Below are positions 14,623 through 62,489 of a stretch of DNA of 64,000 bases, piece after piece. The notes beneath the pieces were generated by a model. That model was given only the letters and a program-made list of their open reading frames with translations, was not told the DNA's origin and made no database searches. Numbering within the stretch: position 1 is the stretch's first letter; each line of letters begins with the position of its first letter. The position numbers and the translations under genes are program-made. The stretch spans positions 80,476,001-80,540,000 of the forward strand of contig OZ076411.1 in assembly GCA_964187785.1 (NCBI GenBank), read 5' to 3'. The stretch comes from Amphiscolops sp. MND2022 (lineage: Eukaryota).

Positions 14623-14822
14623 NNNNNNNNNNNNNNNNNNNNNNNNNNNNNNNNNNNNNNNNNNNNNNNNNNNNNNNNNNNNNNNNNNNNNNNNNNNNNN
14701 NNNNNNNNNNNNNNNNNNNNNNNNNNNNNNNNNNNNNNNNNNNNNNNNNNNNNNNNNNNNNNNNNNNNNNNNNNNNNNNNNNNNNNNNNNNNNNNNNNNN
14801 NNNNNNNNNNNNNNNNNNNNNN
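14623..14822. other. Assembly gap (200 N)
   Basis: Run of exactly 200 N. Contiguity across it is not proven by sequence. Confidence 0.99.
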
Positions 14823-30324: not shown

Positions 30325-31031
30325 TCCTCCCCGGGCCGTAGTTTGTCATCCTCGACAAACGATAGGATGCTCGCACCCAGAGGGTACTTGCGATGGTGAG
30401 AATTAACTTAGTATCTGGACAGAGTTTCATCAACCTCACATTATTTTTTCCTAGCATCTTTTTCGCAAAAAGGCTAGCAAACTCAAGCAAACTCAAAAGG
30501 CACCTGATAAAATTGGAAGAAACGCGACAGTCAGTTTAAGATTTCTTTTACAGTCTTTCCAATCTAGGTTAAAATGTCTGTTCTAAAATGGGCCCCTGCG
30601 CGGCCAAAATAACGACAACGATTTGGTCATGGTAACAATGTTGAAATATTGATTTGAGGAAGGTGGGCACCGACTCGGGACCCGCCCATCAGACACAAAT
30701 GAACTAAAGATCACGCGGATACCTTCAAAACATAGTGCGTACCGCTCAAAATATAATATTTAGCACTAAACTAAACTAACGGATGTTTTATAGCACAGAT
30801 TTTTCATCAGCACCACGTAAACAGAAATTGGTTGTAACACTTCAGTAAGTAGCTTGTTTTGTTAGTTTCATCGAGTGGAAGTCGTTCGGTTAACATTCTC
30901 ATTCCTCAGGGTGATCACATGGTAGATCTTGAATACATGTCGTAGCCGCTGGCTCTAGATTCGTGGAGGGGGCTGTCACCATGGAAGGGTACGGGCCAAA
31001 ATGGTCTATTGTTAGGAGGTTGTTCAGTTCC
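30325..31031 (-). mobile_element. PPT and 3' UTR of a second, truncated copy of the E2 family
   Basis: Direct repeat of 20248-20942. Similarity ends abruptly at CAGTTCC. Confidence 0.9.
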
Positions 31032-31370: not shown

Positions 31371-33135
31371 GGATGGAGATCGTGAAGATTTGACAGTATT
31401 TGGAAAAAAACCGCAACACAGATTATGATTTTGCTCCCCATTTTATGTGGGCAGAAATTAATATGGTGATAGGCCAATGAATTAAACGTTGCTATTATAT
31501 TAAACCGTTCACATGTTGATTTGTATTATAAAAGTCTGATGAGTGGGGGTATGTGAGTGTCTATCGCTCATATTTATTGAACCTATATGTAATGACAGCA
31601 TAGTACTTGTCCACTACTCGACCGTGATTTCGTCCCTAAATGATAACAGCGATTTTTTCGGCAATCCGGCTCTCACCTCAACAAGTGGAACCAACTGCCA
31701 GCCTACCCTTGTTGAAACTACTTGAACTTTTTGCATGTACTTTAATGTTGCCAGCAACTTTTAATATGATTTTCTAAAACTCTTACGGAAACTTTCATGC
31801 GAAAATTTGTCCCTGTTGTATTTAACTTTTATTAAGCTGCTTAAAAGATTCATCGAAGTTTTGGCGGCAATTTTAAGCCTTGAGGTTTTGCAGGTTTCAT
31901 TAAGCAGCAGTTATAATTTTGAAAGCAAATAAGGCGCTATCAATTTTACCGCTAAATCAATGCAAAGTAACTTCAGTCGCATAATAAACTGTAAGTTAGC
32001 GTCATGTCTAGCGTGCTATTTGAGAAGCGGTGATCACATCAGATGAGTAGTTGAGAAAACTACGTGTGAATACAAAAAGATCGTGTCAGTAATTTAGTGT
32101 ATTTTATTTTCAAATTTAATTTCAATAGTGGAAAATGCAGTGTAATTGTACATGATTGACCAACCGAGGTTCTCTGAATTTTCTAGGTTTTATAAAAAAT
32201 TACCCTGCATGCATGCCTGCAGCATGTAAAAAGTTCCTGCAGCTTCAATTAGGGTAACAGTGTGCATTTGAAAGGTTAGGTAACTGGCTTTCAGGTGCAG
32301 AAACCTGATTTAGGCGGCGATATTTTTCGTAGAGAATTGAAGCTTTAAAAAAATTCCAGAATTTTATCATTTTTGCAACTTTTCTGTGTACTGCCGACGC
32401 TAAGTTCATTAGAAAACTTGATCTTTTCACTTTACACTTGCCTTTACTGTTCAGAATATGCTTACCGGCAAAAGTTCTGGCCCTGGCTAAATAAGTGGCA
32501 CTTCTTCAGAGTGTTTACATAAATTTAAAAACTTTAAATTTGCTTATACATACAGTGCCTACATATCAAACAGGTTCTCAATAATGTTTCAGAATTTTTT
32601 TCTCGGGAATTTGAGAAATGATGGAAACTTCGTATTTGTCCAATTTGACCGTATATAGAATCCCATCAAGCTGCAATATCATCAGTATTAGCATCAACAG
32701 TATACAACTCTTCAAATTTAGGTCAATTTCCTCTGAATCAAAACTGTATAAGGAAAATTTATTGCACCAAAAACGTTGAAACCATTTAGCACCCAGCTAA
32801 AAAAATGATCTATACTACCATGTGAGGTTAGACAACAAGCTTGTGAAAGCAGCTTGGAATACACATACCGAAACAGCTTGTGAAACAGCACGATAGCGTA
32901 TCAATCAACTCACGAAAGACGTGAAAAAATTCTAAAACCAAACGGAGAAATTACTGATCGATGTCAAAGTCTTCGCACGACGAGGCCGAGGCCGAAGCCG
33001 ACGCCACCTGTTACCACCACTACGAATCCACCTATAAGGATTCCAACTACAGACAACACATGTGTACCAGTCCACGGATATAGCCAATTGCTGGAAGCCC
33101 ACTTCATATCCGTCAGGCGGGGAATTCATCCACTA

Positions 33136-33506
33136 CTGGGTGAACCAAAAAAAACGGAGCGTTCAAAAATTTTTGTGCTCTCAAAATGTCAAATATTTGT
33201 TAACAAAATGTGCCAAAACAATTTTGAACGCTTAAAATCAGCTTGTCAATCAATCAATTTGACAACAGTGCTTTCACACATTCGAGTGCCAAAGAACTTT
33301 CACACATCAGAAGTGCAAACAAAATGACTGGTAAATATGTCTAGGCTTTCTTGAAGGGCTTGAAAAATGCCTATTTAATCATGTGATCACGTAATGAAAG
33401 CTTCATTTTGAATACTTGACGCAGTGAAAACGCCTTGTTTACTACAAATATGACAATTTCGAGGAGTGAAAAAGTTTAAGCGTTCCGTTTTTTTTGGTTC
33501 ACCTGG
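33136..33506. mobile_element. Tc1/mariner-type MITE (371 bp)
   Basis: TIRs CTGGGTGAACCAAAAAAAACGGAGCG / CGTTCCGTTTTTTTTGGTTCACCTGG, flanked by TA at 33134-33135 and 33507-33508. No ORF. Confidence 0.8.
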
Positions 33507-34090
33507 TACAATTTTTAGTCAGCGAATGTCTAGTCTACAATTTTTAGAAAAAAGCGACTGTAGTCATGGCTTTCCGTCAGTTATTCCTCCTTAGATTTTC
33601 AGCAGAAGCAGAGCGTTTGCGAGCACTGATGGCCACGTTTCCGGCTTTTTGTGACTTAACGAAGTAAACACATTTTGAAAAAAAATCAAGGAAAAGTATT
33701 CGTAAAGTTTTCATGACACCTTTTGGATTTTGAGATTTTTCGTGAAGGAAGCATGTTTCCCGAGTTTTGAGGGTGACCTCTTTAAGCTTTTTTCGAAACT
33801 TTCATTTCGTCAGAAGGTGCCCCCTTCACTTCCATACTTGATTTCGACTTGGGGAAAAGTACGTTTGCGAGCTGAGCGTTCCTTTTTCGGCACGATGAGT
33901 CTTTCCGAAAAAAAGTCGAAAAAATAATTTCCGAAAAACGGATTTTTTTCCAGCTGGGGAAAGGGGCTCTTTTTTCTTTCCCCGCGCTTTTTGAAGAAAA
34001 CAAACTCATTATAAAGGATTATATTTGACTATATCATTCAATATTTCTTCAAATAAGTCGTTTCTTTTGTTTTGTTGTCTCTACACTATT

Positions 34091-37000
34091 AGTAGTAATA
34101 TGAGAGCCGATCAGACAGGGGGTAGGGGACCCCAATGTATTAAGATAGGGCCTAGATCCAGATCCAGGCGAGTAGTTGGTTGTTATATACGAGGGTCCCC
34201 AGGACGGGGGGGGGTCCAAAAAAAAATTTTTTTTTCGACCCAACGGAATTTCCGAGGAAATAAATGAGTCACACGCTCAATCCCGAAAATTTTTGAAATC
34301 CGGGGAAAAAATCTTCGAAAAAGTACATACACCCCCCTGATCTCCACATGCAAAATTTCGAAAAATCGAAAAATTTGAAAAAGGCTTATAAATGATCTGA
34401 AACATTCGAAAATTTGATGAAACGTGTTTCAAGCATCACAAATATTTGAAAAAATGAATGGAAAAATTCCATTGGACATTTTGACAGGACATCAAAAAAT
34501 TGGAAGTCCATGGGAAAATATTTCCATGGTCGACACTTTTAGTCTTTTGAATATTTCTCACACAGTTGAGAAAAACTTAAATTGACCACTGAAGACAAAT
34601 CCAAAAAAAACTGGTACATCAGGAATGACTATGACAAAAGACCGCAAAAATTCCAGAGTGTCATTACATTGAAAACTAATAGCAACTATTGAGTCACTGG
34701 ACGAAGTGATGTTGTGTTGCATTATGCGGATTAATATATGAAAGGAAACAGTCCTATACAGGAAACACAAAGAGCAGATGGCGTTCAAACAATTATCTTT
34801 ACAAAGATGACTTCAATAACATGGAGAAATATTTTTAATATTAGAAAACTCCTTGATTCTGGATATGCATTTCAATATACGGATGAGCAAATATCAGACA
34901 CACGGGAGCCCTCCGATTTTCGTCTACAGCTTTTGGGTGTTTTCTATAGACCGCAATAAAAGTCTGAATATAGCACCAAATGTGTCCAGTCACTTTCTAA
35001 ATGAAACAATAAACGACTATTCTAGGCACGTTTGTTATTCCAATGCAACGATTTAAAAATTATCATTAGTTGAGTATGAAGCAAGCATTACAAGGATTTA
35101 CGTATGTTTCAAATATTTCAGTAGATACTTCTTTTTGTTGAGAGTACATTGAATATTTTTTAATTGTAGCCTATCTTTCATACAAAATCAGCTCCATGTA
35201 ATGTTTTGAAGGTACTTTCAAGACACTTTCATTTCGGGGACACTGTTCCTGTTAATGTTACAAGAATGCCGGTGAAACGATGAATCACAATCAGATTCAG
35301 TTCGACTACACAACCAGTTTTACTACTTTGCTCGAAAAGTGAAACACGCTTATGAAAGGTAATCATAAAATTCATTTGTTGACCTGTTAAATCATCCACT
35401 TCAAGGGAAAAAGATTATCATTGATAGTTAATTGAATCAAAGATGTGTTTAATTTCAACAAGTTACGCCCAAAATACACTGCACAAGACATAGTAAAGAA
35501 CTAGTTCCAATTGAAAATTTTCGTATCGACAACACGAGATTTCCAGCTAGCACTTAATTCACTACATTTATCTACCCGGGTGGAAATAATTTTGATTAAT
35601 CGAACAGCGATGACTGTAAGTGAATACTGTTCGAGGTTTATCAACTTAAACCCATGAAATTCAATTGTTTTGACATGAATATTGAGACGTCATAATCAAA
35701 CATGAATGAAAATGTTTTTAGAAACAATTCCTACCAATAATCTCAAATTGGAATGACACATAAAAAATGAATTTCAGCTAAAATTACGAGCATGTTTTTT
35801 TACATACGGCATGCGAATCCGATATAATCCAGGTCTCAAGTTCCAAAGTCCGAGAAGAAAATGAATATAAACAAAATCGAGGATTAAATATACGAAAGCG
35901 GCAAATTGCAGACAATATAACCACCAAACAAAAGCACTACACCATAGTTAAGAAGTTGATTAGGATTAAACGTGGTATATTTTAACCAAATAAGGTTTCA
36001 TAATACTCCACTGACAAACAATACTGTCGATCAGATCGTATTCTAATATTTTTCTGTATACACCTGGAGTTACTTTTACTAGCGCTATATCCTAAAAAGC
36101 ACACGCATTACAAATGATAACATTGACATGACAGTAAATTTGAGTCTTTAAGTTTGAACGAAGTCATCTTTAGAAACAACTGCTCACTGGGACAGAAAAT
36201 GAAGTACATTTACAATCACAAAAACAAAGTTAATAGCTTATTGTTCTTGAATGCGATTCAACTGATCGTTTTAGCATCGTGCAATTTCGGTGCAATGCTG
36301 TACTTGCAGAAAAAGCACCCTAGATTCTCATATATCCAAAGGATCTGTGTGGATTCCGTCTGAATGCAGTTTACGCTTCGGGTAAAAATATGATAAACCT
36401 TTCTTGGATTGTTCGTAAGATAAACGGCATGGTTTCGCACCCTGAACCCTCGATTAATCGATCCAATATCCGAAACGTCATCCAAAACTTTTCTGTATTT
36501 CTGGAGAGGACCGTCTGATGACTCATTCAAAAAGTGCTTGTTTAAACCCTTACTGCTGAACTTCGTTTTCTTGGTTTGTGAATCATAGCAACAATGTTTT
36601 GCTACACAAGCAAATCATTTCTGTTGCACGGAACTCTTCCTTGAATAAGCCGGGCTCTCGTTTGTCAAGCTGAGAGTGGGTAGAGCAACATGTTCGAGGG
36701 AAGAAGTTACTCAAACTGTCTGCCTCAAAGTTATTACAACAGTCCTCTTTTCTGATGTCTGACCACTCTTCGAGTTTATCTTGTCTGATACAATCAGTAA
36801 TGTCGTTCTCTGCTAAGGCTAAATAGAGAGAGTCTGTATCCATTTCCAATTCCTCGAACTTGCTTTCGTCACAGTACTGCTTGAAGAAGTTATAATAAAG
36901 CTCCAACATTCTGAGCTTAGCGTATTGAAGAATGAAGAAGCCTACAATTATCGGTTCCCGATGTTCTATTTCGGCTTTGACTAGCTCCACTTCATAAACT

Positions 37001-40000
37001 GAATCGTTGATGTACTGAAGTTGTTTGAAGAAGGTACTATTTATGGCTCGGTTAGTCTTTTTCTCATCCAAGTATTTTGTCTCCGTATGCTTGCTGCGAT
37101 CCATGATTTGATATCCATATGAACTGTTACTCAGCAACTTCATCGTCTCAGCAACCACGGTGGAGTTTTTGTTTTGATCACCTAATTGTCGGGCCTCAAC
37201 AACTGACTTCACTAATCCCTTGAAACATTTTTCAGGAGTGTACTCAACAAATCGGTGAACCCTTGTACACTCAAGACCCAGCCTTCTGTAGAAATTAAAA
37301 AGCGGAGTTATAACACAACCATTTTCCAAGTGAAAACTAGAAATTAACATTCTGCTGGGTTGCTGGAGCAGTCCTTTTTGGTCAGCATAGGATTTCATGT
37401 ATTCACCAATATCGCTTTTGCTGACGAAACATTTCTTGAAAATTGGAGGAAAATGTTGAAGGTAGCTTTGAAGATTTTTGGGGACTGATAAATCGCATTG
37501 AACAAATCCAAATAGTAAACCATTGTCGATCTGTTGCAGTAGCTGCTGCTCAGACAAAGGTTTGCGAAATGGGAAATTTATCTTCAAATGCGCCTTTAAG
37601 GTCTTGTCATCTCTCACCTGCTTCCACCAAAGGCATTCCCAAACTTCTACTATTTCGTATCCTTTCCCGATGATGAAATTTTTCCGTTCTGCGTCAAACT
37701 TCCTGCGTTCGTGCCATCGTTTCACAATATTAGCATTCGCTTCTTTCTTTACCATTTGACAATCACAGCCATGATAGAAACATCCCATGGCTTCAAACAC
37801 AGTGTTACAGTGTCCACAAAACCCATCCACACTGAAATTATCAATTTTGTGCAGATTCCCGTTGGTATAAATGCTCTGAATCTTGCAATCACTTCGAGTA
37901 TTTTGCAAATGGTCCATCACCATGTTCTCAAAGCGTCTTCGCCGATTCTGAATGGGAATAAACTTTTTCTTTTCAGTATCAATTTCCCATCTAGTGTATA
38001 ACCCCGTTGGCATTTCCTGGCACATAGAGAAAGGATATAATTGACTAGCATCGATTCCAACAATAGTCTTACACAAGTTGTCAGTATAACGTATTTTGGT
38101 TTCCCCAGCAATTGCTTTCCGTGTGAAAACAATGGAAGGTCCACCGACCATATCTTCTCTGATTTTGTTCAAAAGATCTCGATCATGTTCAGTGAACGGG
38201 TAAAATTTTGCATTTGTCGAAGAGTGCAGACATATGTTGGCTAAATTCGGAAGAGTGCAGCCAAGTTTCAGCATGTCGATTCCACGGTCATGATAAAATT
38301 TCATCATTTTTTGCACAGCTTCCAGTGTTGGAACCACATCTTTGTTATTGTACCACTTTAAAAAATCTTTGATTGTTCTCATGTTTTGGGATTCCCAAAC
38401 AGCCTGCAAATGAGAGTAGTTTTCCTTTCCTGTAGGGGGAACAGAGCAAATTCTCATTTCTCGCAAGGCATCTTTTTCGGTACAACCATTGAGAAGTAAA
38501 TTTTCGAACTTTTTATAAACGGCTTCCAGAGGATTCTGATTTCGAAGCTTGCTGAAAAAAATCTGTATATGATGGAAGGTGTTCATTGTCAAGTTTTGTT
38601 ACACAGTCAAACCATTCATAAGGGAAGAAACCCTTAGTCTCCGAAGATTCGTAAGCTTTTAAAAATGAATCTAGAGTTGTTGCTCCACCAATGAAATTCA
38701 TGAAATCGAGCATCTGCACATTACCAAATTTGAAGGAGATGAATTGATTGGTTTTTTTATTGACACGAGGTTGCAAACCCTTTTCCTTGATCAGAATTGG
38801 AATGAAATATGATTTTATAAGGTTCAAATCATACCTAGCACTGTTGAAGCCAAAAACTGGAAACGTTGATATGTAATTATCTAGGGTTTCCTGTAGGTCG
38901 AGTAAATCCCGTTTTCTTTGGTTTAAAAACTTGCTGGAGAATTGTTGTGCTGACCTTTTCAATAAAGCCGATTCCTCCAAGATTATCTTGTCAGAGAGCT
39001 CCTCTAGCTTCTCACTAACAGCTGCGGTAACGTCTGCAAATTGTGAATGCATTTGGTCTCGGCTTTCATTTGCAAGATTTTCCAACGAATCCACGAATTG
39101 AGTTACCACTTTGATCGGTTGTGGGTCACATATAAATATGGGACTTTTGAGAAGGTTAGAAGATATTGATACGGAAATGGGCTCATGCTTACCCACCCAT
39201 GAAGTTGAATTGTTTGACACGGAATTGTTTTCCGACACGCAAATTGATTCGAAATCGAAAATTGCGAGATTTTTAAAAAGTCGGTAATCTTCTGGAACTG
39301 TAATTCCAAATTTCGAAAGTTTCTCGAACACTGTTTCCTTCAATTGGTACGCGGAGTTTGGGAATTTTTCCCTAACTTTTTCACTACAAACTGGCAAATG
39401 ACGGCGCAAATTGGAATGCTTCTGGAAAAACGTGTTACAATTTTCACACCGGAAGCAATTGAAAACAGCACTGAGGTCCTTCGTGTAACAGATGTGGTTC
39501 TGGTAACTCAGAAGCGTAACGCTTCTGGAATGTTTATTGATACTGCGTCGTGATAAAACCCCAACTAGCTGATCATTTTCAGCTTCGATTTCGTAGATGC
39601 TGATGTTCAGCCCTGTTAGATCTTCTATGTCATTGATTGCTTCTAAGGTTACCCCGTCGAAATCGTTAATATCCACTTTACAGTGTTCCAGAAATCGTTG
39701 GAAAAGATTCGCTGTCTGTTCCTCCAAATTTTGTTTGCCTGTGAGGTGAAATGCAACAGCTCTTAATAAGCACAAGTTGTCGTTGTAGGGTTTGTACGAG
39801 GAATTGGTTGATAGACAGAATATCTTCTTGTTTTTGAGGATGCATGAGGGAATTTCCAGGTTTTGACAACCTAATGGGATTTCTTTCAGAATTGCAGCAA
39901 AAACAGTCATATTTGTAACAAAAGCAAATTTCCATTTTGTGTTTGGTCGCTCTCGTGTGGCTCTTTCAACGAAGTCTTCCAGGGAAAGTTTTGCTATGAT

Positions 40001-42206
40001 ATTGTCAAGGTCTTTTTCTTTACTCAAAATTTGTGAAGTATTGAAAATGAGTGAGTTTTCGTGAGCATAATATAAGCGGTAATAATCGCTTTCAATATTA
40101 CGGAGGACAAAACCCAGGCTGACATTGATTTTAGCAGTGTTGTCAAGGTTGGCGAACACTAGTCGAAGTTTTTCAGCCATCACTGCTGGACTCAATTCCG
40201 TCAAAGCGAAGTTGAAAACATGTTGTTTTCCGCGAATTGATTCCGAATCAACAAGAAAGTATTCAACATTGTGGAGTTCTTCCCGAAGTTGTTGATTCGC
40301 GTGATCCCCCATGATTGTGTCTAGGTCAACCTTTCCTGAAAGTGTAACATTCGACTGTGACAGACTACCATGGAGAGTTTGCTTATGTTTGCGGACAGCG
40401 TAGAAACTGTGGAATGTTAGCATACACTCAGTGCAAGTGAATTTTTTTGTCAAGTCTTCTTTGCGATGTTTTTCTGCTGTGTGGTAATCCAGTTCTTCCT
40501 TGCTCTTCGCTGTGAATTTTGGACATTCGGGACAGAATAAACTTCCTCTCATGCACGACTTGTTGTTTTTGGCAACTCTTTTCCCACATTTGTCACATTC
40601 AATGGGTTTGTTTCTATCCAGAGCTGGCATTTAATGGTCTGAAAGTAGCAATCTTCAACGTGAAAAGAATGAAATATTCAAATTGGAAAGGGATATTTTC
40701 GTGTAGTAAAATAGAAGTTGACCAAAAAGATCCTAATTGATTATGCCGCGTTGGAATATGACTTCTGATTTAATGTCTAATCAAAAGAGGTTTCATCGCA
40801 GTAGAACAAAACTTTTCCATATGTTTTACGGTCAAGGAGGTTTAAGAAGCCCAAAATTTTGTGTGTACTCGAAAATGGTTTTAGGAAAAATAATTTTGTT
40901 TGTGATCGGTTTCGAACACAAAAGTCTTTTCCTACAACACAAATCTTTGTTGACGTGAATTTGTAGAAACTTGGATATGGGATATGGGTAATGAATGAAA
41001 AAAACGAAAATTCATATTAAAATACATTGATATCGAGAAGTGATTCGTAATGACTAAACGCTAAATCGAACACTTGGAGTCTCGTTGTCGGTGATTGAAA
41101 TCTATACCTTTAGGAACAGACTGAAAAGGAAAAAAATGTTTTTGTTTGTTGTATTGCAGCGGTTATCTCGGAACGAGTTTTTTAGGTGTACTACACTCAA
41201 TGTGGCACTAAAGGTTCTTAAATTGAATCACGTGAGAGTAATCCTGAATCAGTTGTTTTTGGCACAAGATCAAACTTCAAAGCGAAAGCGGGGCAACGTA
41301 ATAAGAGTTCGCGATTGATTATGCGTGTGTTTAGTCAATGCCGCCTTTCAAGATTTCATTTTGAGTCACCCACACTAATGCATGATTGCTGTATCGAAAC
41401 GGATGAACTGGAGCGTCATGCTGAGTAGACATTGAAGTGGCATTCAATTATCTAATGCAGCTGTAGTCTTTGAAGTTTTCTTTAATTGTGTGTTGTCACA
41501 GATTTCGAATTTGAATCACGTGGACATATTTGGTAATTGTTATATAGACTGATTGACAAGAGCGTCATGCTGTATAGACATGAAAGGGACGCCGACATCC
41601 TTTTTTTTGTGTATCCGGTTCACTTTCACGAAGCCCTTTTAATCTTTCAAGCGTTCAATTTTTGCGTTTTGCCTATTGAATCATGCGTATTTCGAGTTTA
41701 TGACTAGTATAAAAATGACAATTTCATGTTTGAAACTCAATGCCTTGTTTTAAAAAGTAAAACATAAGGTTGATTTTCCGAAAAAGAAAAATCCATGTTG
41801 ATTTCAACCAGATAACGGGATTAATGACAGATCTGAAAGAATTTTATAGTGAAATTCGTCGCTAGACATATGTAGAATAGAACTAATTGTCTCGGTGTCC
41901 AGTAGACCTTACAACGCAACACGAAATCTTTTGAATTATGTATATCTGGAATGTTTGCCAAAGTTATGTAAATGGTTTTCTCCGAAACTCATTCTTGGGC
42001 CCCAAACAATTTGAAGAACATCTCCAGAGTAAGTGAGATCTTTTTAAAAACTACAGATAGTGTGGTCAGCAAAAAATCATTGCATTGTCAAAAATTGAAT
42101 TGAGCGTTCTTGTAGTCAGTTTTATATGCCAATTTCAGTTTTCTGACTCTTATATTCTAACCCGCGTGGATATGTTTGAAATTGAGTGAGCACGAGTTTT
42201 TGGAAC
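34091..42206 (+). repeat. Left arm (~8.1 kb) of giant inverted repeat
   Basis: Reverse complement of 42623-50741 throughout. Mirrored ORF pairs include 41085-41318/43516-43749, 40737-40958/43877-44098 and 34738-34959/49870-50091. Confidence 0.97.
36328..40630 (-). pseudogene. polB: Protein-primed DNA polymerase B (Polinton type) with N-terminal C2H2 fingers and a VSR-like insertion, left copy, 3 frameshifts
   Basis: ExoI AIFDFES, ExoII VFGFNSARYD, ExoIII YNNKDV; Pol motifs GIDASQLYP, KLLSNSSYG, EMDTDS, KFSSKG; C-terminus TYEQSKKGLSYFYPKR..DGIHTDPLDI. Frameshifts at ~38555 (A7 run), ~36590 and ~36420. Confidence 0.95.
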
Positions 42207-42622
42207 ATGTCATTTATGGAGTAGCTCGAAAGCTTGATGTGGTCATTACTGGATTGTTATCCAGGTTTCGAGTATCTTCCTATTCAGCAAACACGAAAAA
42301 AAATTAGAAGGAATGACACCTTCAATTATAATTTGAGCAAGTAGTGTGCCAAATTACTATTAATAACATGTTGGTAGGCTAATTCAACAGTTAGGTTTTT
42401 CGAGTTGAAGCTCTTAAGGTTTGATCAGCAGAGAATTCGGAGATTAAAAAGAATTAAAATGGTCGAATGTCAGAATTACTAGTGGACATTGAGAGATTAG
42501 CCACGAACTGAATAAACAAGACAGAACGTACCTAACCAAAAAAAATCATCTTGAAAATCAATGATTGGCTGATAACGTTACTACAACGCTACCGATGATG
42601 AATGAATCAAACATGCGAGCTA
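42207..42622. other. Unique central spacer of the palindrome (~415 bp)
   Basis: Arm-to-arm complementarity decays at ~42206/42623, with only weak residual similarity for ~35 bp inward. Confidence 0.85.
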
Positions 42623-45600
42623 GTTCAGAAAATCATGCTCACTCAATTTCAAATATATCAACGCGGGTTAGAATATAAGAGTCAGAAAACTGAAATTGGC
42701 ATATAAAACTGACTACAAGAACGCTCAATTCAATTTTCGACAATGCAATGATTTTTTGCTGACCACACTATCTGTAGTTTTTAAAAAGATCTCACTTACT
42801 CTGGAGATGTTCTTCAAATTGTTTGTGGCCCAAGAATGAGTTTCGGAAAAAACCATTTACATAACTTTGGCAAACATTCCAGACATACATAATTCAAAAG
42901 TTATTAATTTCGTGTTGCGTTGTAATGTCTACTGGACACCGAGACAATTAGTTCTATTCTACATATGTCTAGCGACGAATTTCACTATAAAATTCTTTCC
43001 GATCTGTCATTAATCCCGTTATCTGGTTGAAATCAATATGGATTTTTCTTTTTCGGAAAATCCACCTTATGTTTTACTTTTTACAACAAGGCATTGAGTT
43101 TCGAACATGAAATTGTCATTTTTATACTTGTCATAAACTCGAAATACGCATGATTCAATAGGCAAAACGCAAAAATTGAACGCTTGAAAGATTAAAAGGG
43201 CTTCGTGAAAGTGAACCGGATACACAAAAAAAAGGATGTCGGCGTCCCTTTCATGTCTATACAGCATGACGCTCTTGTCAATCAGTCTATATAACAATTA
43301 CCAAATATGTCCACGTGATTCAAATTCGAAATCTGTGACAACACACAATTAAAGAAAACTTCAAAGACTACAGCTGCATTAGATAATTGAATGCCACTTC
43401 AATGTCTACTCAGCATGACGCTCCAGTTCATCCGTTTCGATACAGCAATCATGCATTAGTGTGGGTGACTCAAAATGAAATCTTGAAAGGCGGCATTGAC
43501 TAAACACACGCATAATCAATCGCGAACTCTTATTACGTTGCCCCGCTTTCGCTTTGAAGTTTGATCTTGTGCCAAAAACAACTGATTCAGGATTACTCTC
43601 ACGTGATTCAATTTAAGAACCTTTAGTGCCACATTGAGTGTAGTACACCTAAAAAACTCGTTCCGAGATAACCGCTGCAATACAACAAACAAAAACATTT
43701 TTTTCCTTTTCAGTCTGTTCCTAAAGGTATAGATTTCAATCACCGACAACGAGACTCCAAGTGTTCGATTTAGCGTTCAGTCATTACGAATCACTTCTCG
43801 ATATCAATGTATATTAATATGAATTTCGTTTTTTTTTCTTTCATTACCCATATCCCATATCCAAGTTTCTACAAATTCACGTCAACAAAGATTTGTGTTG
43901 TAGGAAAAGACTTTTGTGTTCGAAACCGATCACAAACAAAATTATTTTTCCTAAAACCATTTTCGAGTACACACAAAATTTTGGGCTTCTTAATCCTCCT
44001 TGACCGTAAAACATATGGAAAAGTTTTGTTCTACTGCGATGAAACCTCTTTTGATTAGACATTAAATCAGAAGTCATATTCCAACGCGGCATAATCAATT
44101 AGGATCTTTTTGGTCAACTTCTATTTTACTACACGAAAATATCCCTTTCCAATTTGAATATTTCATTCTTTTCACGTTGAAGATTGCTACTTTCAGACCA
44201 TTAAATGCCAGCTCTGGATAGAAACAAACCCATTGAATGTGACAAATGTGGGAAAAGAGTTGCCAAAAACAACAAGTCGTGCATGAGAGGAAGTCTATTC
44301 TGTCCCGAATGTCCAAAATTCACAGCGAAGAGCAAGGAAGAACTGGATTACCACACAGCAGAAAAACATCGCGAAGAAGACTTGACAAAAAATTCACTTG
44401 CACTGAGTGTATGCTAACTGAGTGTATGCAGAGAGTGTATAAGCAAACTCTCCATGGTAGTCTGTGACAGTCGAATGTTACACTTTCAGGAAAGGTTGAC
44501 CTAGACACAATCATGGGGGATCACGCGAATCAACAACTTCGGGAAGAACTCCACAATGTTGAACACTTTCTTGTTGATTCGGAATCAATTCGCGGAAAAC
44601 AGCATGTTTTCAACTTCGCTTTGACGGAATTGAGTCCTGCAGTGATGGCTGAAAAACTTCGACTAGTGTTCGCCAACCTTGACAACACTGCTAAATCAAT
44701 GTCAGCCTGGGTTTTGTCCTCCGTAATGCTGAAAGCGATTATTACCGCTATTATTATGCTCACGAAAACTCACTCATTTTCAATACTTCACAAATTTTGA
44801 GTAATGAAAAATACCTTGACAATATCATAGCAAAACTTTCCCTGGAAGATTTCGTTGAAAGAGCCACACGAGAGCGACCAAACACAAAATGGAAATTTGC
44901 TTTTGTTACAAATATGACTGTTTTTGCTGCAATTCTGAAAGAAATCCCATTAGGTTGTCAAAACCTGGAAATTCCCTCATGCATCCTCAAAAACAAGAAG
45001 ATATTCTGTCTATCAACCAATTCCTCGTACAAACCCTACAACGACAACTTGTGCTTATTAAGAGCTGTTGCATTTCACCTCACAGGCAAACAAAATTTGG
45101 AGGAACAGACAGCGAATCTTTTCCAACGATTTCTGGAACACTGTAAAGTGGATATTAACGATTTCGAGGGGGTAACCTTAGAAGCAATCAATGACATAGA
45201 AGATCTAACAGGGCTGAACATCAGCATCTACGAAATCGAAGCTGAAAATGATCAGCTAGTTGGGGTTTTATCACGACGCAGTATCAATAAACATTCCAGA
45301 AGCGTTACGCTTCTGAGTTACCAGAACCACATCTGTTACACGAAGGACCTCAGTGCTGTTTTCAATTGCTTCCGGTGTGAAAATTGTAACACGTTTTTCC
45401 AGAAGCATTCCAATTTGCGCCGTCATTTGCCAGTTTGTAGTGAAAAAGTTAGGGAAAAATTCCCAAACTCCGCGTACCAATTGAGGGAAACAGTGTTCGA
45501 GAAACTTTCGAAATTTGGAATTACAGTTCCAGAAGATTACCGACTTTTTAAAATTCTCGCAATTTTCGATTTCGAATCAATTTGCGTGTCGGAAAACAAT

Positions 45601-48600
45601 TCCGTGTCAAACAATTCAACTTCATGGGTGGGTAAGCATGAGCCCATTTCCGTATCAATATCTTCTAACCTTCTCAAAAGTCCCATATTTATATGTGACC
45701 CACAACCGATCAAAGTGGTAACTCAATTCGTGGATGCCTTGGAAAATCTTGCAACTGAAAGCCGAGACCAAATGCATTCACAATTTGCAGACGTTACCGC
45801 AGCTGTTAGTGAGAAGCTAGAGGAGCTCTCTGACCAGATAATCTTGGAGGGATCGGCTTTATTGAAAAGGTCAGCACAACAATTCTCCAGCAAGTTTTTA
45901 AACCAAAGAAAACGGGATTTACTCGACCTACAGGAAACCCTAGACAATTACATATCAACGTTTCCAGTTTTTGGCTTCAACAGTGCTAGGTATGATTTGA
46001 ACCTTATAAAATAATATTTCATTCCAATTCTGATCAAGGAAAAGGGTTTGCAACCTCGTGTCATTTAAAAAACCAATCAATTCATCTCCTTCAAATTTGG
46101 TAATGTGCAGATGATCGATTTCATGAATTTCATTGGTGGAGCAACAACTCTAGATTCATTTTTAAAAGCTTACGAATCTTCGGAGACTAAGGGTTTCTTC
46201 CCTTATGAATGGTTCGACTGTGCAACAAAACTTGACAATGAACACCTTCCATCATATACAGATTTTTTCAGCAAGCTTCGAAATCAGAATCCTCTGGAAG
46301 CCGATTATAAAAAGTTCGAAAATTTACTTCTCAATGGTCGTACCGAAAAAGATGCCTTGCGAGAAATGAAAATTTGCTCTGTTCCCCCTACAGGAAAGGA
46401 AAACTACTCTCATTTGCAGGCTGTTTGGGAATCCCAAAACATGAGAACAATCAAAGATTTTTTAAAGTGGTACAATAACAAAGATGTGGTTCCAACACTG
46501 GAAGCTGTGCAAAAAATGATGAAATTTTATCATGACCGTGGAATCGACATGCTGAAACTTGGCTGCACTCTTCCGAATTTAGCCAACATATGTCTACACT
46601 CTACGACAAATGCAAAATTTTACCCATTCACTGAACATGATCGAGATCTTTTGAACAAAATCAGAGAAGATATGGTCGGTGGACCTTCCATTGTTTTCAC
46701 ACGGAAAGCAATTGCTGGGGAACCAAAATACGTTATACTGACAACTTGTGTAAGACTATTGTTGGAATCGATGCTAGTCAATTATATCCTTTCTCTATGT
46801 GCCAGGAAATGCCAACTGGGTTATACACTAGATGGGAAATTGATACTGAAAAGAAAAAGTTTATTCCCATTCAGAATCGGCGAAGACGCTTTGAGAACAT
46901 GGTGATGGACCATTTGCAAAATACTCGAAGTGATTGCAAGATTCAGAGCATTTATACCACCGGGAATGTGCACAAAATTGATAATTTCAGTGTGGATGGG
47001 TTTTGTGGACACTGTAACACTGTGTTTGAAGCCATGGGATGTTTCTATCATGGCTGTGATTGTCAAATGGTAAAGAAAGAAGCGAATGCTAATATTGTGA
47101 AACGATGGCACGAACGCAGGAAGTTTGACGCAGAACGGAAAAATTTCATCATCGGAAAAGGATACGAAATAGTAGAAGTTTTGGAAAGCCTTTGGTGGAA
47201 GCAGGTGAGAGATGACAAGACCTTAAAGGCGCATTTGAAGATAAATTTCCCATTTCGCAAACCTTTGTCTGAGCAGCAGCTACTGCAACAGATCGACAAT
47301 GGTTTACTATCTGGATTTGTTCAATGCGATTTATCAGTCCCCAAAAATCTTCAAAGCTAACTTCAACATTTTCCTCCAATTTTCAAGAATTGTTTCGTCA
47401 GCAAAAGCGATTTTGGTGAATACATGAAATCCTATGCTGACCAAAAAGGACTGCTCCAACAACCCAGCAGAATGTTAATTTCTAGTTTTCACTTGGAAAA
47501 TGGTTGTGTTATAACTCCGCTTTTTAATTTCTACAGAAGGCTGGGTCTTGAGTGTACAAGGGTTCACCGATTTGTTGAGTACACTCCTGAAAAATGTTTC
47601 AAGGGATTAGTGAAGTCAGTTGTTGAGGCCCGACAATTAGGTGATCAAAACAAAAACTCCACCATGGTTGCTGAGACGATGAAGTTGCTGAGTAACAGTT
47701 CATATGGATATCAAATCATGGATCGCAGCAAGCATACGGAGACAAGATACTCGGATGAGAAAAAGACTAACCGAGCCATAAATAGTACCTTCTTCAAACA
47801 ACTTCAGTACATCAACGATTCAGTGTATGAAGTGGAGCTAGTCAAAGCCGAAATAGAACATCGGGAACCGATAATTGTAGGCTTCTTCATTCTTCAATAC
47901 GCTAAGCTCAGAATGTTGGAGCTTTATTATAACTTCTTCAAGCAGTACTGTGACGAAAGCAAGTTCGAGGAATTGGAAATGGATACAGACTCTCTCTATT
48001 TAGCCTTAGCAGAGAACGACATTACTGATTGTATCAGACAAGATAAACTCGAAGAGTGGTCAGACATCAGAAAAGAGGACTGTTGTAATAACTTTGAGGC
48101 AGACAGTTTGAGTAACTTCTTCCCTCGAACATGTTGCTCTACCCACTCTCAGCTTGACAAACGAGAGCCCGGCTTATTCAAGGAAGAGTTCCGTGCAACA
48201 GAAATGATTTGCTTGTGTAGCAAAACATTGTTGCTATGATTCACAAACCAAGAAAACGAAGTTCAGCAGTAAGGGTTTAAACAAGCACTTTTTGAATGAG
48301 TCATCAGACGGTCCTCTCCAGAAATACAGAAAAGTTTTGGATGACGTTTCGGATATCGGATCGATTAATCCAGGGTTCAGGGTGCGAAACCATGCCGTTT
48401 ATCTTACCAACAATCCAAGAAAGGTTTATCATATTTTTACCCGAAGCGTAAACTGCATTCAGACGGAATCCACACAGATCCTTTGGATATATGAGAATCT
48501 AGGGTGCTTTTTCTGCAAGTACAGCATTGCACCGAAATTGCACGATGCTAAAACGATCAGTTGACTCGCCTTCAACAACAATAAGCTATTAACTTTGTTT

Positions 48601-50741
48601 TTGTGATTGTAAATGTATTACTTCATTTTCCGTCCCAGTGAGCAGTTGTTTCTAAAGATGACTTCGTTCAAACTTAAAGACTCAAATTTACTGTCATGTC
48701 AATGTTATCATTTGTAATGCGTGTGCTTTTTAGGATATAGCGCTAGTAAAAGTAACTCCACGTGTATACAGAAAAATATTAGAATACGATCTGATCGACA
48801 GTATTGCTTGTCAGTGGAGTATTATGAAACCTTATTTGGTTAAAATATACCACGTTTAATCCTAATCAACTTCTTAACTATGTCTTATGGTGTAGTGCTT
48901 TTGTTTGGTGGTTATATTGTCTGCAATTTGCCGCTTTCGTATATTTAATCCTCGATTTTGTTTATATTCATTTTCTTCTCGGACTTTGGAACTTGAGACC
49001 TGGATTATATCGGATTCGCATGCCGTATGTAAAAAAACATGCTCGTAATTTTAGCTGAAATTCATTTTTTATGTGTCATTCCAATTTGAGATTATTGGTA
49101 GGAATTGTTTCTAAAACATTTTCATTCATGTTTGATTATGACGTCTCAATATTCATGTCAAAACAACTGAATTTCATGGGTTTAATTGATAAACCTCGAA
49201 CAGTATTCACTTACAGTCATCGCTGTTCGATTAATCAAAATTATTTCCACCCGGGTAGATAAATGTAGTGAATTAAGTGCTAGCTGGAAATCTCGTGTTG
49301 TCGATACGAAAATTTTCAATTGGAACTAGTTCTTTACTATGTCTTGTGCAGTGTAATTTGGGCGTAACTTGTTGAAATTAAACACATCTTTGATTCAATT
49401 AACTATCAATGATAATCTTTTTCCCTTGAAGTGGATGATTTAAGAGGTCAACAAATGAATTCTATGATTACCTTTCATAAGCGTGTTTCACTTTTCGAGC
49501 AAAGTAGAAAACTGGTTGTGTAGTCGAACTGAATCTGATTGTGATTCATCGTTTCACCGGCATTCTTGTAACATTAACAGGAACAGTGTCCCCGAAATGA
49601 AAGTGTCTTGAAAGTACCTTCAAAACATTACATGGAGCTGATTTTGTATGAAAGATAGGCTACAATTAAAAAATATTCAATGTACTCTCAACAAAAAGAA
49701 GTATCTACTGAAATATATGCAACATACGTAAATCCTTGTAATGCTTGCTTCATACTCAACTAATGAAAATTTTTAAATCGTTGCATTGGAATAACAAACG
49801 TGCCTAGAATAGTCGTTTATTGTTTCATTTAGAAAGTGACTGGACACATTTGGTGCTATATTCAGACTTTTATTGCGGTCTATAGAAAACACCCAAAAGC
49901 TGTAGACGAAAATCGGAGGGCTCCCGTGTGTCTGATATTTGCTCATCCGTATATTGAAATGCATATCCAGAATCAAGGAGTTTTCTAATATTAAAAATAT
50001 TTCTCCATGTTATTGAAGTCATCTTTGTAAAGATAATTGTTTGAACGCCATCTGCTCTTTGTGTTTCCTGTATAGGACTGTTTCCTTTCATATATTAATC
50101 CGCATAATGCAACACAACATCACTTCGTCCAGTGACTCAATAGTTGCTATTAGTTTTCAATGTAATGACACTCTGGAATTTTTGCGGTCTTTTGTCATAG
50201 TCATTCCTGATGTACCAGTTTTTTTTTGGATTTGTCTTCAGTAGTCAATTTAAGTTTTTCTCAATTGTGTGAGAAATATTCAAAAGACTAAAAGTGTCGA
50301 CCATGGAAATATTTTCCCATGGACTTCCAATTTTTTGATGTCCTGTCAAAATGTCCAATGGAATTTTTCCATTCATTTTTTCAAATATTTGTGATGCTTG
50401 AAACACGTTTCATCAATTTTTCGAATGTTTCAGATCATTTATAAGCCTTTTTCAAATTTTTCGATTTTTCGAAATTTTGCATGTGGAGATCAGGGGGGGG
50501 GGTGTATGTACTTTTTCGAAGATTTTTTCCCCGGATTTCAAAAATTTTCGGGATTGAGCGTGTGACTCATTTATTTCCTCGGAAATTCCGTTGGGTCGAA
50601 AAAAAAATATTTTTTTGGACCCCCCCGTCCTGGGGACCCTCGTATATAACAACCAACTACTCGCCTGGATCTGGATCTAGGCCCTATCTTAATACATGGG
50701 GGTCCCCTACCCCCTGTCTGATCGGCTCTCATATTACTACT
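42623..50741 (-). repeat. Right arm (~8.1 kb) of giant inverted repeat
   Basis: Reverse complement of 34091-42206, with scattered substitutions and small indels. Confidence 0.97.
44205..48494 (+). pseudogene. polB: Protein-primed DNA polymerase B, right copy, multiply disrupted
   Basis: Same motifs as the left copy, split over ORFs 44205-44417, 44513-44800, 44797-46014, 46105-46905, 46746-47360, 47424-48239 and 48292-48564. Confidence 0.95.
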
Positions 50742-51189
50742 ACTATTAGAGTAGTTTTACGCTTGAACAAAACATTGTTCACACATTTTGACTAATAATG
50801 TTCGTATTTAGTGTTTATTGATGACTCAAAACAGGAAGCTGTTGATTTCTCCATCAAAAATGCGTAACTACATAGGAAAAAGTGTGAACAAAGTTTGTAT
50901 CTGAACCCTAAACTATCACCCTGAGAAAAAAATTAAAACTGAACTGTGTTATTGGAAACGCAATTGAGATATAATTAATTGCAAAAACATCATCTTGAAA
51001 AGTGTGGGGAAAAGGAAAAAGTTCCGGAAAAAGTAGTTTCCAAATTTTATGTGTATCCCTTGGGCTACTTTTCGGCACTGAGAAACTGATAAAAGTTTAA
51101 AAATACTGTTCTTTCATATTTAGGAATTTTTTTCAAACTTGAGCCGATCCCGGCTTGTTAATCAAACAGTTAAGAGATATCTCATTTCA

Positions 51190-53520
51190 ATGATTGTATA
51201 CTGTGCCACTTAAATGCTTCGTTTACACTTTTCCAATCAACAAAAAAAAACTCCAGTTGGTTGCAAAATATGAAAAAAAATTAAAGGTGGGACCCTTTGG
51301 AGACTTTGAAAAAATTTCGAAAAAAATTAAATATGAGGTTTTTAAACAGCGTCACAGTGCTGAAAATGTAAAAGGGGTGACCGTTTGGAAATTTTTGACA
51401 TGCATTCTGTTGCAAACTATCGACACAAATGAAGGGACCCTTTTGTGCAATTCAAAATATTTCGAAAAAAGTCTCATATTGCCAAAAAATTCCGAGTGAA
51501 AAACAGCAAAGGGGGTCCTTAGTATGTTTTCGAGGTTGTGGACGTCGGTTTTGTTTCTTTTTGTTTTGGCGAGGTTCTGAGTTTTAGTATTTTGAACCTC
51601 CGTAGTTCATCAACTTGTTAAACAAATGAACAAAAAAGTGTACTTTACGTGTCTAAAAAACTACCCACTGTAATTGTCGGGCTCATTTTCTACTAAAATG
51701 TGCCGAGTAAAAAACGGTATCAAAATTGTATTATAATGGCTGCGGCAACCATAAATTTGGCATGACTAACTATTTAATTTTTTAATCATGTTTTTGACTT
51801 GAAATGTTTTTCAAAAAAAAACATTTTCTTGTTTCGAGTTAGTTTCACTCTTACATTAGAAGCGTTTTGACTGATAATCTAGTGATCTACTACCTCAACT
51901 AGCAAGCTAACCACTACAAGCGATACTGCACCAGGATTGATCGCTATTTACAAAACGCACCAAAACAAAAAGCACCCAAACTCGGCGCGTTTTTGCGAGA
52001 TAACCTCCGGCAATTCGCATGGACAGTGTATTGAGTTTTAGGGTTTATGATTTTCTTTTAATACTTTTTAGGAGTCAGAAAAAAATTTCGACTATTCATG
52101 CAATTTTTTTTCACCCGACTTTCATTTTCTCAAAAAGTGTTCATATTATTTTTCAAAAAATAGCAGCCATTCCACACTCAAAGATGCACTTGCGTGCGCA
52201 ATGGCGTTAAAATCGTATGACTGTTATCTGAGAAACATAGCCAAAGTTAGTTCAAAAATTACCAAAATACGGCTGTTTTAGATTTTTTTTAGATTCTCTC
52301 AAAAACTGATCATAAGATTCGAACGATTTTGCAGTCATTCTACACCATAAAAAAAGTTCTATATCTGCAATTTCATCAAAATGTTAAGACTGGGATTCAA
52401 GTGAGTCAGAGAAAGTCATAACCCTACTTCTTCAACGCACACGCGTCTGTAGTTTCTCATGAACTCTATGACTTGTCAGAACCTTGCGACTTCTTAGGTG
52501 TTTTTCTTTTGCGTTTTCCAGTCTGTGGACGTGTAATTTTAAAAAGCAAGTAGATTTTTTGATTGAAGTCAAATGATGAGCGAAAAATCTTCAGATCAGG
52601 CTTGTTCAGTTTAGTTTTGCAAAGGCAAGCTGTTCCATTGATTTTTAGTCGGCGCATTTTAGAAGAAAATGAGCCCGACTATTACAGTGGCTAGTTTTTG
52701 TTTCGTCAGATAACAGAATGTATGCGTACTGGACACTTTTTACAGAACTACTAAAGTACTGGATCGGCAAACGAGGAGTGCATTTAAGATAGTGCAAAGG
52801 GTCCCCCCTTTCAGTAACTCCACTTTTATCGTAAGATACAAAACCGGACGAGACTATAGGGTCCCCCCTTTGAGTTTTTTTCGGCACTGTGCGACTTTTT
52901 TTCGAATTTTTTTTGTATCCAAAGGGTCCCCCATCGACTTTTTCGATATTTTACAGCAAACTGAAGTTTTGGAAAGCCCAAAGCCCTTTCAAGTTTTTCG
53001 GCACTATAAGACTGGCTCAAAATTCTTTTTCAATTTTTTTCGAAAATTTTTTATTGTCTCGAAAGGGTCCCCCCTTCAATTTTAAAAATATTTTGCAACA
53101 TAATAGATATATAAAAATCCCAAAGGGTCCCCTCTTTCAGATTTTTCGGCACTATGAGACTTCAAAATTGTCATTTTTTGTCTGAAATTAGGTTTTTTCA
53201 GTATATATCCACCAATAATTTTTTTAAAGCTACCCGAAACTTGGACGTAATATGGAGTAAAGCACTATATCCGAATTTTTGACATTATATACGAATTATA
53301 TTCTGTTTTACTAAGGAGGAGGCGGAGGTTCGAAAACAAGCGCTTCCATTTGTCCCAGCACACTATATCCGATCTTTGAGACGTTACACCGCGCAACAAA
53401 TTGGATTTTGAAAAAACCCAAAGGGTCCCACCTTTTACAATTTCAAGAAGTTTGAGTTTTTTGAGCCTTAAATATGGCGCCGACTTTAGACGTTCTCGTC
53501 TTGTTCGACAAAACGTGGTT
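51190..53520. repeat. Complex non-coding repeat family with AAAGGGTCCCCC / TTTTCGGCACT subrepeats, two copies in opposite orientation
   Basis: GGGACCC-type motifs at 51285-51530 and reverse-oriented AAAGGGTCC repeats at 52795-53430. ~55-bp inverted repeat at 51655-51712/52642-52700. A related fragment lies at ~18720-18950. Confidence 0.65.
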
Positions 53521-62480: not shown

Positions 62481-62489
62481 GAGACGAAC

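Follow-up and report, generated by a model that had tools for sequence, protein, structure and literature searches.

Why should nearly the whole of a 16.6-kb insertion in a eukaryotic chromosome consist of two mirror-image copies of one polymerase gene region? The insertion lies in a 64,000-nucleotide stretch of Amphiscolops sp. MND2022 DNA (assembly GCA_964187785.1, contig OZ076411.1, positions 80,476,001 to 80,540,000, hereafter the window), and a preliminary description had read it as a palindromic, polB-only derivative of a Polinton, a virus-like transposon. To test whether the palindrome exists as described, we compared the region with itself by blastn and obtained one inverted match, 34090-42206 against 50742-42623, with 98.24% identity over 8140 columns, about 100 mismatches and 20 gap openings. 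A MAFFT alignment of the two arms gave 101 mismatches (44 transitions and 57 transversions) and 17 gap events. The arms make up 97.5% of the 16,651-bp element and flank an unpaired centre, and a weak 26-nt inverted repeat (42213-42238 / 42606-42631, 77%) suggests that the true loop is somewhat shorter. The left terminus reads AGTAGTAATATGAGAGCC... and the right terminus is its exact reverse complement. The observation is therefore confirmed, with two remarks: the span 34085-50747 given in the preliminary description includes both copies of the target-site duplication, and the polymerase genes it called whole are present in their full extent and point outward, but neither is intact. No other copy of the element lies in the window, and a sensitive blastn and a tblastn detected no polB similarity in the window outside the element. 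A search of the window with Rfam found nothing, and the ORFs of the flanks have no Pfam hits.

Features of the palindromic element (positions are those of the window)
Feature	Position	Strand	Description
Left target-site duplication	34085..34090		ACTATT, read directly; identical to the right hexamer
Left arm	34091..42206		8116 bp; outer end begins AGTAGT; 98.2% identical to the reverse complement of the right arm
Subterminal motif, left-end copy	34135..34149	-	CCTATCTTAATACAT; full relatives carry it in multiple tandem copies near their ends
Zinc-finger/polB gene, left copy	36258..40630	-	Three ORF pieces of at least 80 aa (705, 669 and 90 aa), so at least 2 interruptions; intact-looking relatives also split the gene into a zinc-finger ORF and a polymerase ORF, so one of the two may be native
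Loop (spacer)	42207..42622		416 bp, unpaired; core about 42239-42605; no conserved ORF and no transposon features; same sequence at the centre of palindromic copy L017
Right arm	42623..50741		8119 bp; outer end finishes ACTACT
Zinc-finger/polB gene, right copy	44166..48564	+	More decayed: six ORF pieces of at least 80 aa, so at least 5 interruptions; 4 stop codons relative to the left copy's frames; the two copies differ by 6 frame-shifting gap events
Subterminal motif, right-end copy	50683..50697	+	CCTATCTTAATACAT
Right target-site duplication	50742..50747		ACTATT

To examine whether the structure could have arisen during sequencing or assembly, we looked for it in other records and, as the preliminary description had proposed, at other loci. 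A second assembly record (ENA ERZ25074608 ctg185505, 524 kb, 98x) reproduces the arms, the loop and the arm differences with 5 mismatches and 1 gap in 22 kb (99.95%), although it may derive from the same reads and is not fully independent. The same genome assembly holds at least three more palindromic copies, on contigs of 206-502 kb, which we label by locus. L004 is a palindrome with about 52 nt between the arms and a right end ...ACTACT followed by CTCTTG. L005 has both ends with a perfect AACGCT duplication, the same inner arm boundary as the window and an asymmetric join at its centre, and is flanked by a PPWD1-like exon whose best named hit is 68%. L017 has arms that are 97% alike, contains the window's loop sequence and has a right end ...ACTACT followed by GATATT. 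A further locus, L014, is a partial copy from a 23%-diverged subfamily with a 1.5-kb inverted duplication upstream of polB. On the other haplotype, a contig (L001) stops inside the arm about 1.1 kb from the loop, so the palindrome is not confirmed there. L001 is equidistant from the two arms (65 versus 64 columns, with the states interspersed at random), which fits an insertion about as old as the haplotype split, though we could not explain it further. Joining the two flanks to look for an empty site found no paralogous one among the sequences in hand.

We next asked what the arms encode. Each arm runs from the terminus through about 2.2 kb of non-coding DNA, the zinc-finger/terminal-protein plus protein-primed polymerase gene (zinc-finger/polB), and about 1.6 kb of upstream DNA. 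The assignment as a protein-primed family B polymerase with a long N-terminal region rests on 859 homologues, on PF03175 in 4 of 20 aligned relatives (best E 2.4e-12), and on invariant columns that fit family B motifs A, B and C in order, while the window's own pieces fall below the Pfam cut-off (17.5 versus 25.8 bits). Sequence searches against solved structures found no polymerase with either the single ORFs or a 20-sequence profile, and the profile hit only Vsr endonuclease. The AlphaFold model of the 669-aa ORF was poor (pLDDT 56, pTM 0.38) and a fold search with it recovered only a Vsr-like nuclease insert, so the protein-primed subdomains (TPR1 and TPR2 insertions, N-terminal terminal-protein and vOTU domains; PMC11161782) were not confirmed from this model. 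We found no rve integrase, packaging ATPase, protease or capsid gene: there is no ORF of at least 80 aa outside polB, no Pfam hit, no tblastn match to the ORFs of a full relative other than the zinc-finger/polB gene, and no small ORF that stays open across copies, although spliced genes in the arms cannot be excluded by ORF methods. The loop shows no terminal repeats or duplication of its own, which argues against its being a transposon.

To place the element, we compared it with related loci that carry more genes. L015 and L018 carry rve integrase, and L002, L013, L016 and L018 carry an A32-type ATPase. L018 has terminal inverted repeats (TIRs) of at least about 380 bp. In L002, L015, L016 and L018, polB sits at one end pointing outward and 4-12 copies of CCTATCTTAATACAT are present, and L015 and L016 end in ...CTACTACT, so that the termini and the subterminal motif of the palindromic element are shared with integrase-bearing elements, as would be expected for a non-autonomous derivative of a Polinton. 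These full relatives with matching ends, however, come from another assembly (ERZ26859043), and the one full Polinton examined from the same assembly as the element, L013, has a polB only 62% identical and lacks the motif; no helper is therefore identified in this genome. A scan of a collection of viral contigs for the terminal motif gave 7 internal hits in unrelated contigs, which we take as chance. The termini start with a reiterated trinucleotide (AGT AGT), the kind of terminal reiteration that protein-primed replicons of the phi29, PRD1 and adenovirus types use for sliding-back initiation, a role inferred here by analogy only.

To determine how the copies have evolved, we compared the polymerase segment within and between loci. 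Distances are 1.1-3.6% within a locus, 6.8-11.2% between loci and 23% to L014, and the two arms of each copy are each other's closest relatives. dN/dS is 0.19-0.43 between copies, including the window versus L017, which share the loop, whereas it is 0.57-1.0 (one value 2.3) between the arms of one copy. Mismatch density between the window's arms is 1.37% in coding DNA and 1.10% in non-coding DNA. These results indicate purifying selection on polB between copies and roughly neutral change within copies, and suggest a long-lived parasitic lineage that kept only its own DNA polymerase, in which the palindrome propagated as a palindrome under selection for its polymerase, its arms being re-homogenised along the way. 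The transition/transversion ratio of the arm differences, 0.77, is low for neutral decay.

We consider it more likely than not that the insertion is one integrated, now dead copy of a family of palindromic, polymerase-only derivatives of Polintons. Our data establish the architecture of two inverted copies of the polB-bearing end joined by a loop of about 0.4 kb and inserted with a 6-bp duplication, its recurrence at three or more other loci and with the same loop at one of them, the sister relationship of the arms, the contrast in selection between and within copies, and the ends shared with full Polintons; the mechanism and the way of life of the family are what we infer from them. In this view, the founder arose when replication of a Polinton from its polB end turned back on itself (copy-back or hairpin formation), giving a molecule with two good replication and integration ends, which then persisted as a replicon that supplies its own terminal-protein/polymerase and uses integrase, and capsid proteins if it is packaged, from full Polintons. 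The arms would be made alike repeatedly during propagation, most simply because the displaced single strand of a palindrome snaps back into an 8-kb hairpin that restores a duplex terminus for protein-primed initiation and exposes arm differences to correction or template switching, and after integration the copies would decay neutrally. No free linear or hairpin form has been seen and everything rests on integrated copies, and chromosomal gene conversion could also keep arms alike.

The interpretation offered in the preliminary description is thus supported in part. Its derivation from the polB end of a Polinton, the absence of other recognisable Polinton genes, insertion as a unit with a 6-bp duplication and the argument against a fold-back artefact hold, and its suggestion of an undescribed non-autonomous class is a fair description, since the element belongs to a family of which we found no description in the searchable literature. 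Not supported as written are the whole polB genes, in the sense of intact ones, and a single accident of replication, because the palindrome with its loop is shared by copies 9% apart and polB was under purifying selection during that divergence. Strand switching as the origin, the helper integrase and any interference with a parent element, by analogy with defective-interfering genomes, are inferences only.

Among the alternatives, the one that survives best, though we think it unlikely, is that the same structure had a different origin: the family first grew long TIRs that took in polB and then lost everything between them by deletion, the loop being what remains of the interior. Gene-bearing TIRs of about 2 kb, and mobile Polinton derivatives that have lost a core gene, are reported in butterflies (preprint 10.1101/2025.02.07.637071), and L014, with only a 1.5-kb inverted duplication next to a full arm, could be an intermediate or a truncated form. 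However, the loop and the inner 1.6 kb show no similarity to any gene of the full relatives, and no intermediate with long TIRs and retained internal genes was seen among the eight related loci. The two origins leave nearly the same end product, so the present data hardly separate them.

Less likely still is that each palindrome was made afresh, just before integration, from a non-palindromic polB-bearing parent lineage, in which case the arms would be alike at insertion without any homogenisation and selection would have acted in the parents. The differing centres (416 bp in the window, about 52 nt in L004, an asymmetric join in L005) are in favour of this, but they are as easily explained by deletions at a palindrome centre. 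The window and L017, 9% apart, share the same loop and arm boundary, and L005 shares the boundary, which calls for one origin or a strictly site-specific turn-round, and no non-palindromic member of this clade was found among five loci.

It is very unlikely that the arms are kept alike by gene conversion in the chromosome, which large sex-chromosome palindromes undergo, with the copies spreading by segmental duplication: the copies have unrelated flanks, exact Polinton-type ends and different 6-bp target-site duplications, the last of which already largely refute this reading, within-copy differences look neutral and evenly spread, a runs test between the arms and the other haplotype found no conversion tracts, and purifying selection on polB between copies is not expected for dead chromosomal duplicates. 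An assembly or read artefact (a fold-back chimeric read or a mis-join of two haplotypes) is all but excluded by the 1.8% arm divergence, the unique loop, the distinct flanks with a perfect duplication and the recurrence at three or more other loci, even though palindromes are a failure mode of long-read libraries, one contig of the other haplotype ends inside the arm and the second assembly may share reads with the first.

We compared the element with the systems closest to it. With Polintons (Mavericks), represented here by L015, L016, L018, L002 and L013, it shares the protein-primed family B polymerase, AG...CT ends, a 6-bp target-site duplication (5-8 bp, usually 6 bp, in Polintons), homologous termini and subterminal motif, and polB at one end pointing outward; it differs in that no rve integrase, packaging ATPase, protease or capsid gene was detected, in its two polB copies per element, and in TIRs of 8.1 kb against roughly 0.1-1.5 kb as summarised in preprint 10.1101/2023.08.22.554363. 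The butterfly Polintons (10.1101/2025.02.07.637071) likewise have TIRs that contain whole genes, which are thus present twice, and derivatives that lost a core gene yet kept transposing, but there the TIRs hold capsid and protease genes and cover a small part of the element, and it is polB that is lost, whereas here polB is the only gene kept. Snap-back or copy-back defective viral genomes show nearly complete self-complementarity built from one genome end, so that both ends carry the replication origin (PMC13506859), a feature that our element has, its arms matching the polB end of full relatives; long-inverted-repeat DNA is reported from incomplete adenovirus particles (Daniell 1976). Those genomes are short-lived by-products that lack replication genes and depend on the parent for replication, whereas this lineage keeps its own polymerase under selection, has diversified by 9-23% and is integrated in a host genome. 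The yeast linear killer plasmid pGKL1, a protein-primed linear replicon, reportedly gave rise to a hairpin form and its palindromic dimer made from one end of the parent (Kikuchi and co-workers, 1980s), but these are cytoplasmic laboratory isolates that are not integrated, with no target-site duplication and no evidence of long-term evolution. Linear pPolB plasmids of mitochondria and yeast cytoplasm are minimal replicons of TIRs plus terminal-protein/pPolB derived from Polinton-like ancestors (PMC11161782), but they have short TIRs and are extrachromosomal, whereas this element has Polinton integration ends and chromosomal copies.

A more far-reaching possibility, which we put forward tentatively, is that these copies record a stable, evolving lineage of hairpin/palindromic replicons in a eukaryote, in effect a satellite of Polintons that keeps only the terminal-protein/polymerase gene under purifying selection, regenerates or corrects its second arm each cycle through a snapped-back single strand, and borrows integrase and perhaps capsids from full Polintons. 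That would be a kind of selfish element not yet described, lying between linear pPolB plasmids, defective viral genomes and non-autonomous transposons.

Polintons sit at the junction of eukaryotic DNA viruses, linear plasmids and transposons, yet direct observation of their replication has not been described. On the practical side, the family flags a class of repeats that breaks assemblies, as in the haplotype contig that ends inside the arm. A family in which only the polymerase gene and the ends are detected, doubled into a palindrome and still showing selection on the polymerase, would imply that the polymerase acts on its own element's ends and that the ends alone suffice for integration in trans. 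The contrast between sister arms within a copy and 7-11% divergence between copies is a natural record of how such replicons copy themselves, and makes a hairpin (snap-back) intermediate a concrete hypothesis that sequence data could address. It would also show that defective-genome architectures known from virus cultures can become heritable lineages.

To determine whether the large inverted repeat is real, we compared the region 34085-50747 with the window by blastn and obtained a single inverted match, 34090-42206 against 50742-42623, with 98.24% identity over 8140 columns, about 100 mismatches and 20 gap openings. A global alignment of the two arms gave 101 mismatches (44 transitions, 57 transversions; a low transition/transversion ratio of 0.77) and 17 gap events, 7 of which are in homopolymer runs. 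The arms enclose an unpaired centre, into which a weak extension of the pairing suggests a shorter true loop. The element begins AGTAGT and ends ACTACT, the hexamer ACTATT lies directly outside both ends, and no other copy of the element is present in the window. The palindrome reported in the preliminary description was confirmed by these comparisons, and the inverted repeat is both real and very large.

To examine whether the structure could be an assembly artefact, we searched for other records of the same locus. The 705-aa ORF of the left arm is on record, residue for residue, on contig ctg185505 (524 kb, 98x) of the ENA assembly ERZ25074608, and the 22 kb of this contig that we compared (L003) match the window with 5 mismatches and 1 gap, including both arms, the loop and the differences between the arms. 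The contig names look like those of a HiFi metagenome assembler, so the arm differences are unlikely to be read noise. However, this assembly may share reads with that of the window, and we count it as a second assembler rather than a second sample. A shorter contig of the same assembly (L001, 94x) is the other haplotype of the right arm and right flank; it is 99.3% identical over 10 kb and confirms the right junction, but it stops inside the arm about 1.1 kb from the loop. L001 matches the right arm at 65 and the left arm at 64 of the columns where the arms differ, with the two states interspersed at random, and it lacks about 85 bp that both arms of the window carry. The equidistance fits an insertion roughly as old as the split of the two haplotypes, although the private changes of the arms (about 0.7-0.9% each) exceed what the flank divergence (0.67% in total) would predict. 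The stronger argument against an artefact is that the design recurs at other loci.

On the outward-pointing strand each arm carries one long gene, which reads as ORFs of 705, 669 and 90 aa in the left arm and as six pieces of at least 80 aa in the right arm. The 669-aa ORF has 859 homologues at E<=0.001 in the protein collection, several of them annotated PF03175, and in an alignment with 19 relatives, 4 members hit PF03175 (best E 2.4e-12) and the invariant columns include residues that fit family B motifs A, B and C in the right order, whereas the window's own pieces are below the Pfam cut-off. The N-terminal ORF has weak C2H2 zinc-finger hits. A Vsr-like, PD-(D/E)xK-type, homing-endonuclease-like domain is inserted in the polymerase, as supported by a profile hit to Vsr endonuclease (E 0.003), by Pfam MTES_1575 and DUF559 in relatives, and by fold matches to I-Bth0305I and Vsr, both obtained with a predicted structure that was too poor to confirm the protein-primed subdomains. 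This insert is in line with the diverse homing-endonuclease inserts noted for Polinton pPolBs, which also carry an N-terminal terminal-protein plus vOTU region (PMC11161782).

Outside this gene, we found no ORF of at least 80 aa in the arms, nothing that matches any ORF of a full relative, and, among eleven small ORFs, none that stays open across copies. The term 'polB-only' in the preliminary description therefore holds, with the reservation that spliced genes would escape these methods. Both gene copies are broken. The left copy has at least 2 interruptions, one of which may be native because relatives with an intact polymerase ORF also split the gene into a zinc-finger ORF and a polymerase ORF. 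The right copy has at least 5 interruptions; in the left copy's frames it carries 4 stop codons, and all 6 gap events that separate the two copies within the gene shift the frame.

The closest protein hits that we looked up all led to ERZ25074608 and showed that the element belongs to a family rather than being an accident. L004 (502-kb contig, 97x), which diverges from the window by 6.8-7.5% over a 2-kb polymerase segment, has two arms meeting with about 52 nt between them and a right end ...ACTACT followed by CTCTTG, its left end lying outside the locus. L005 (206 kb, 185x; 7.6-8.2%) has both ends with a perfect AACGCT duplication, and its right arm runs to the same inner boundary as the window's arms, while its left arm is cut short so that the element is asymmetric; at this asymmetric junction the inner end of the arm is followed by two extra degenerate copies of a roughly 14-nt unit, suggesting slippage or microhomology at the join. 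L017 (343 kb, 213x; 8.8-9.2%) has arms 97% alike, a centre that contains the window's loop sequence (83-88% identical) plus about 590 nt more, and a right end ...ACTACT followed by GATATT. A second element of the same family starts 600 bp after this right end, in inverted orientation and 8% diverged from the L017 palindrome, and the insertions are therefore clustered. L014 (309 kb; 23.4-23.8%) shows a full arm with a homologous terminus, plus a 1.5-kb inverted duplication upstream of polB. Over the same segment, the two arms of one locus differ by 1.1-3.6%, different loci differ by 6.8-11.2%, and L014 differs from all others by about 23%.

Full relatives were found in another assembly, ERZ26859043 (loci L002, L015, L016 and L018), and one in the same assembly as the palindromic copies (L013). 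They carry rve integrase (L015, L018) and an A32-type packaging ATPase (L002, L013, L016, L018), together with a string of other genes, and then the zinc-finger ORF and polB at one end, pointing outward. L018 shows ordinary TIRs of at least about 380 bp, built of 30-bp units, and L015 and L016 end in ...CTACTACT like the window's element. The 15-mer CCTATCTTAATACAT occurs once near each end of the palindromic copies and 4-12 times near the ends of L002, L015, L016 and L018, whereas L013, the one full element from the same genome, lacks it. In these full relatives the 15-mer lies in subterminal arrays of about 30-bp units, one in each unit, and the arrays may be a binding-site array for replication or integration proteins. 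The arm is therefore the polB end of such an element, and the ends are of the type that integrase-bearing relatives use.

Coordinates of the palindromic element, of other features of the window and of features in related loci
Sequence	Position	Strand	Feature
Window	34085-34090		Left ACTATT hexamer
Window	34091-42206		Left arm
Window	42207-42622		Unpaired centre (416 bp)
Window	42213-42238 with 42606-42631		Weak extension of the pairing (77%)
Window	about 42239-42605		Suggested true loop
Window	42623-50741		Right arm
Window	50742-50747		Right ACTATT hexamer
Window	28513-50624		Part matched by L003
Window	36100-38100		Polymerase segment used for divergence between loci
Window	36586-38592	-	Vsr-like / PD-(D/E)xK homing-endonuclease-like domain, roughly the middle third of the 669-aa ORF
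Window	about 36730-36815 and 48007-48092		About 85 bp absent from L001
Window	1-8000		Skew opposite to that of 54000-64000 (-0.14 to -0.24), at higher GC
Window	54000-64000	+	Ten kilobases strongly C-poor on the + strand (GC skew +0.19 to +0.49), not tandem-repetitive
Window	14623-14822		Run of 200 N (assembly gap or mask)
Window	19884-20942 and about 29950-31025		Dispersed repeat of about 1.07 kb in inverted orientation, 90.7% identical, unrelated to the element
Window	33134-33508, 51656-52699 and 53095-53456		Small MITE-like inverted and direct repeats in both flanks, some containing an AAAGGGTCCC-type motif
L005	6381-6440		Asymmetric arm junction
L017	16694-21644		Second element of the same family
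L018	1-384 and 14529-15250		Subterminal array
L015	12408-13045		Subterminal array
L016	12338-12763		Subterminal array
L002	13520-13996		Subterminal array

To determine how selection has acted on the gene, we calculated Nei-Gojobori dN/dS using the two long ORFs of the left arm as the frame. Between copies, dN/dS is 0.19-0.33 for the polymerase part and 0.26-0.43 for the N-terminal part, with dS of 0.11-0.25, and this includes the comparison of the window with L017, which share the loop. Between the two arms of one copy, dN/dS is 0.57, 0.70, 0.89 and 1.0 for the polymerase part and 0.67, 0.70 and 2.3 for the N-terminal part, and the mismatch density between the window's arms is no lower in coding DNA (1.37%) than in non-coding DNA (1.10%). 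We conclude that the lineages diverged while polB mattered and that each copy has decayed freely since insertion. The loop-bearing palindrome predates a dS of about 0.24, yet arms within a copy differ by dS of only 0.02-0.05, implying that the arms must have been made alike again and again during propagation; otherwise each copy was made afresh, which the shared loop argues against.

The structure of the element, its recurrence at other loci, the kinship of its ends with those of full relatives and the contrast in selection between and within copies come directly from the sequence comparisons, whereas the origin, replication, homogenization and integration described next are inferred. In this view, a copy-back or hairpin event at the polB end of a Polinton gave a molecule with two good ends, which would replicate with its own terminal-protein/polymerase. 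The reiterated AGT at the terminus is the kind of repeat that protein-primed systems use for sliding back, and by analogy it may serve the same purpose here. The displaced strand of a palindrome could fold into an 8-kb hairpin, which would rebuild a duplex end and pair arm with arm, giving a route to homogenization, and an integrase supplied in trans would then insert the element with a 6-bp duplication. The main rival for the origin is growth of the TIRs followed by loss of the interior, since gene-bearing 2-kb TIRs are reported in butterfly Polintons, and the present data do not separate the two origins well. The interpretation offered in the preliminary description is partly supported, its copy-back origin and integration by a helper integrase being inferred rather than shown.

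In the literature that we could search, we found nothing of this design among reports on palindromic, inverted-duplicated, non-autonomous or polB-only Polintons. The element is a Polinton derivative by ancestry and by its ends, but it fails two defining features of Polintons (integrase and the morphogenetic module), and its architecture and evolutionary persistence are unusual.
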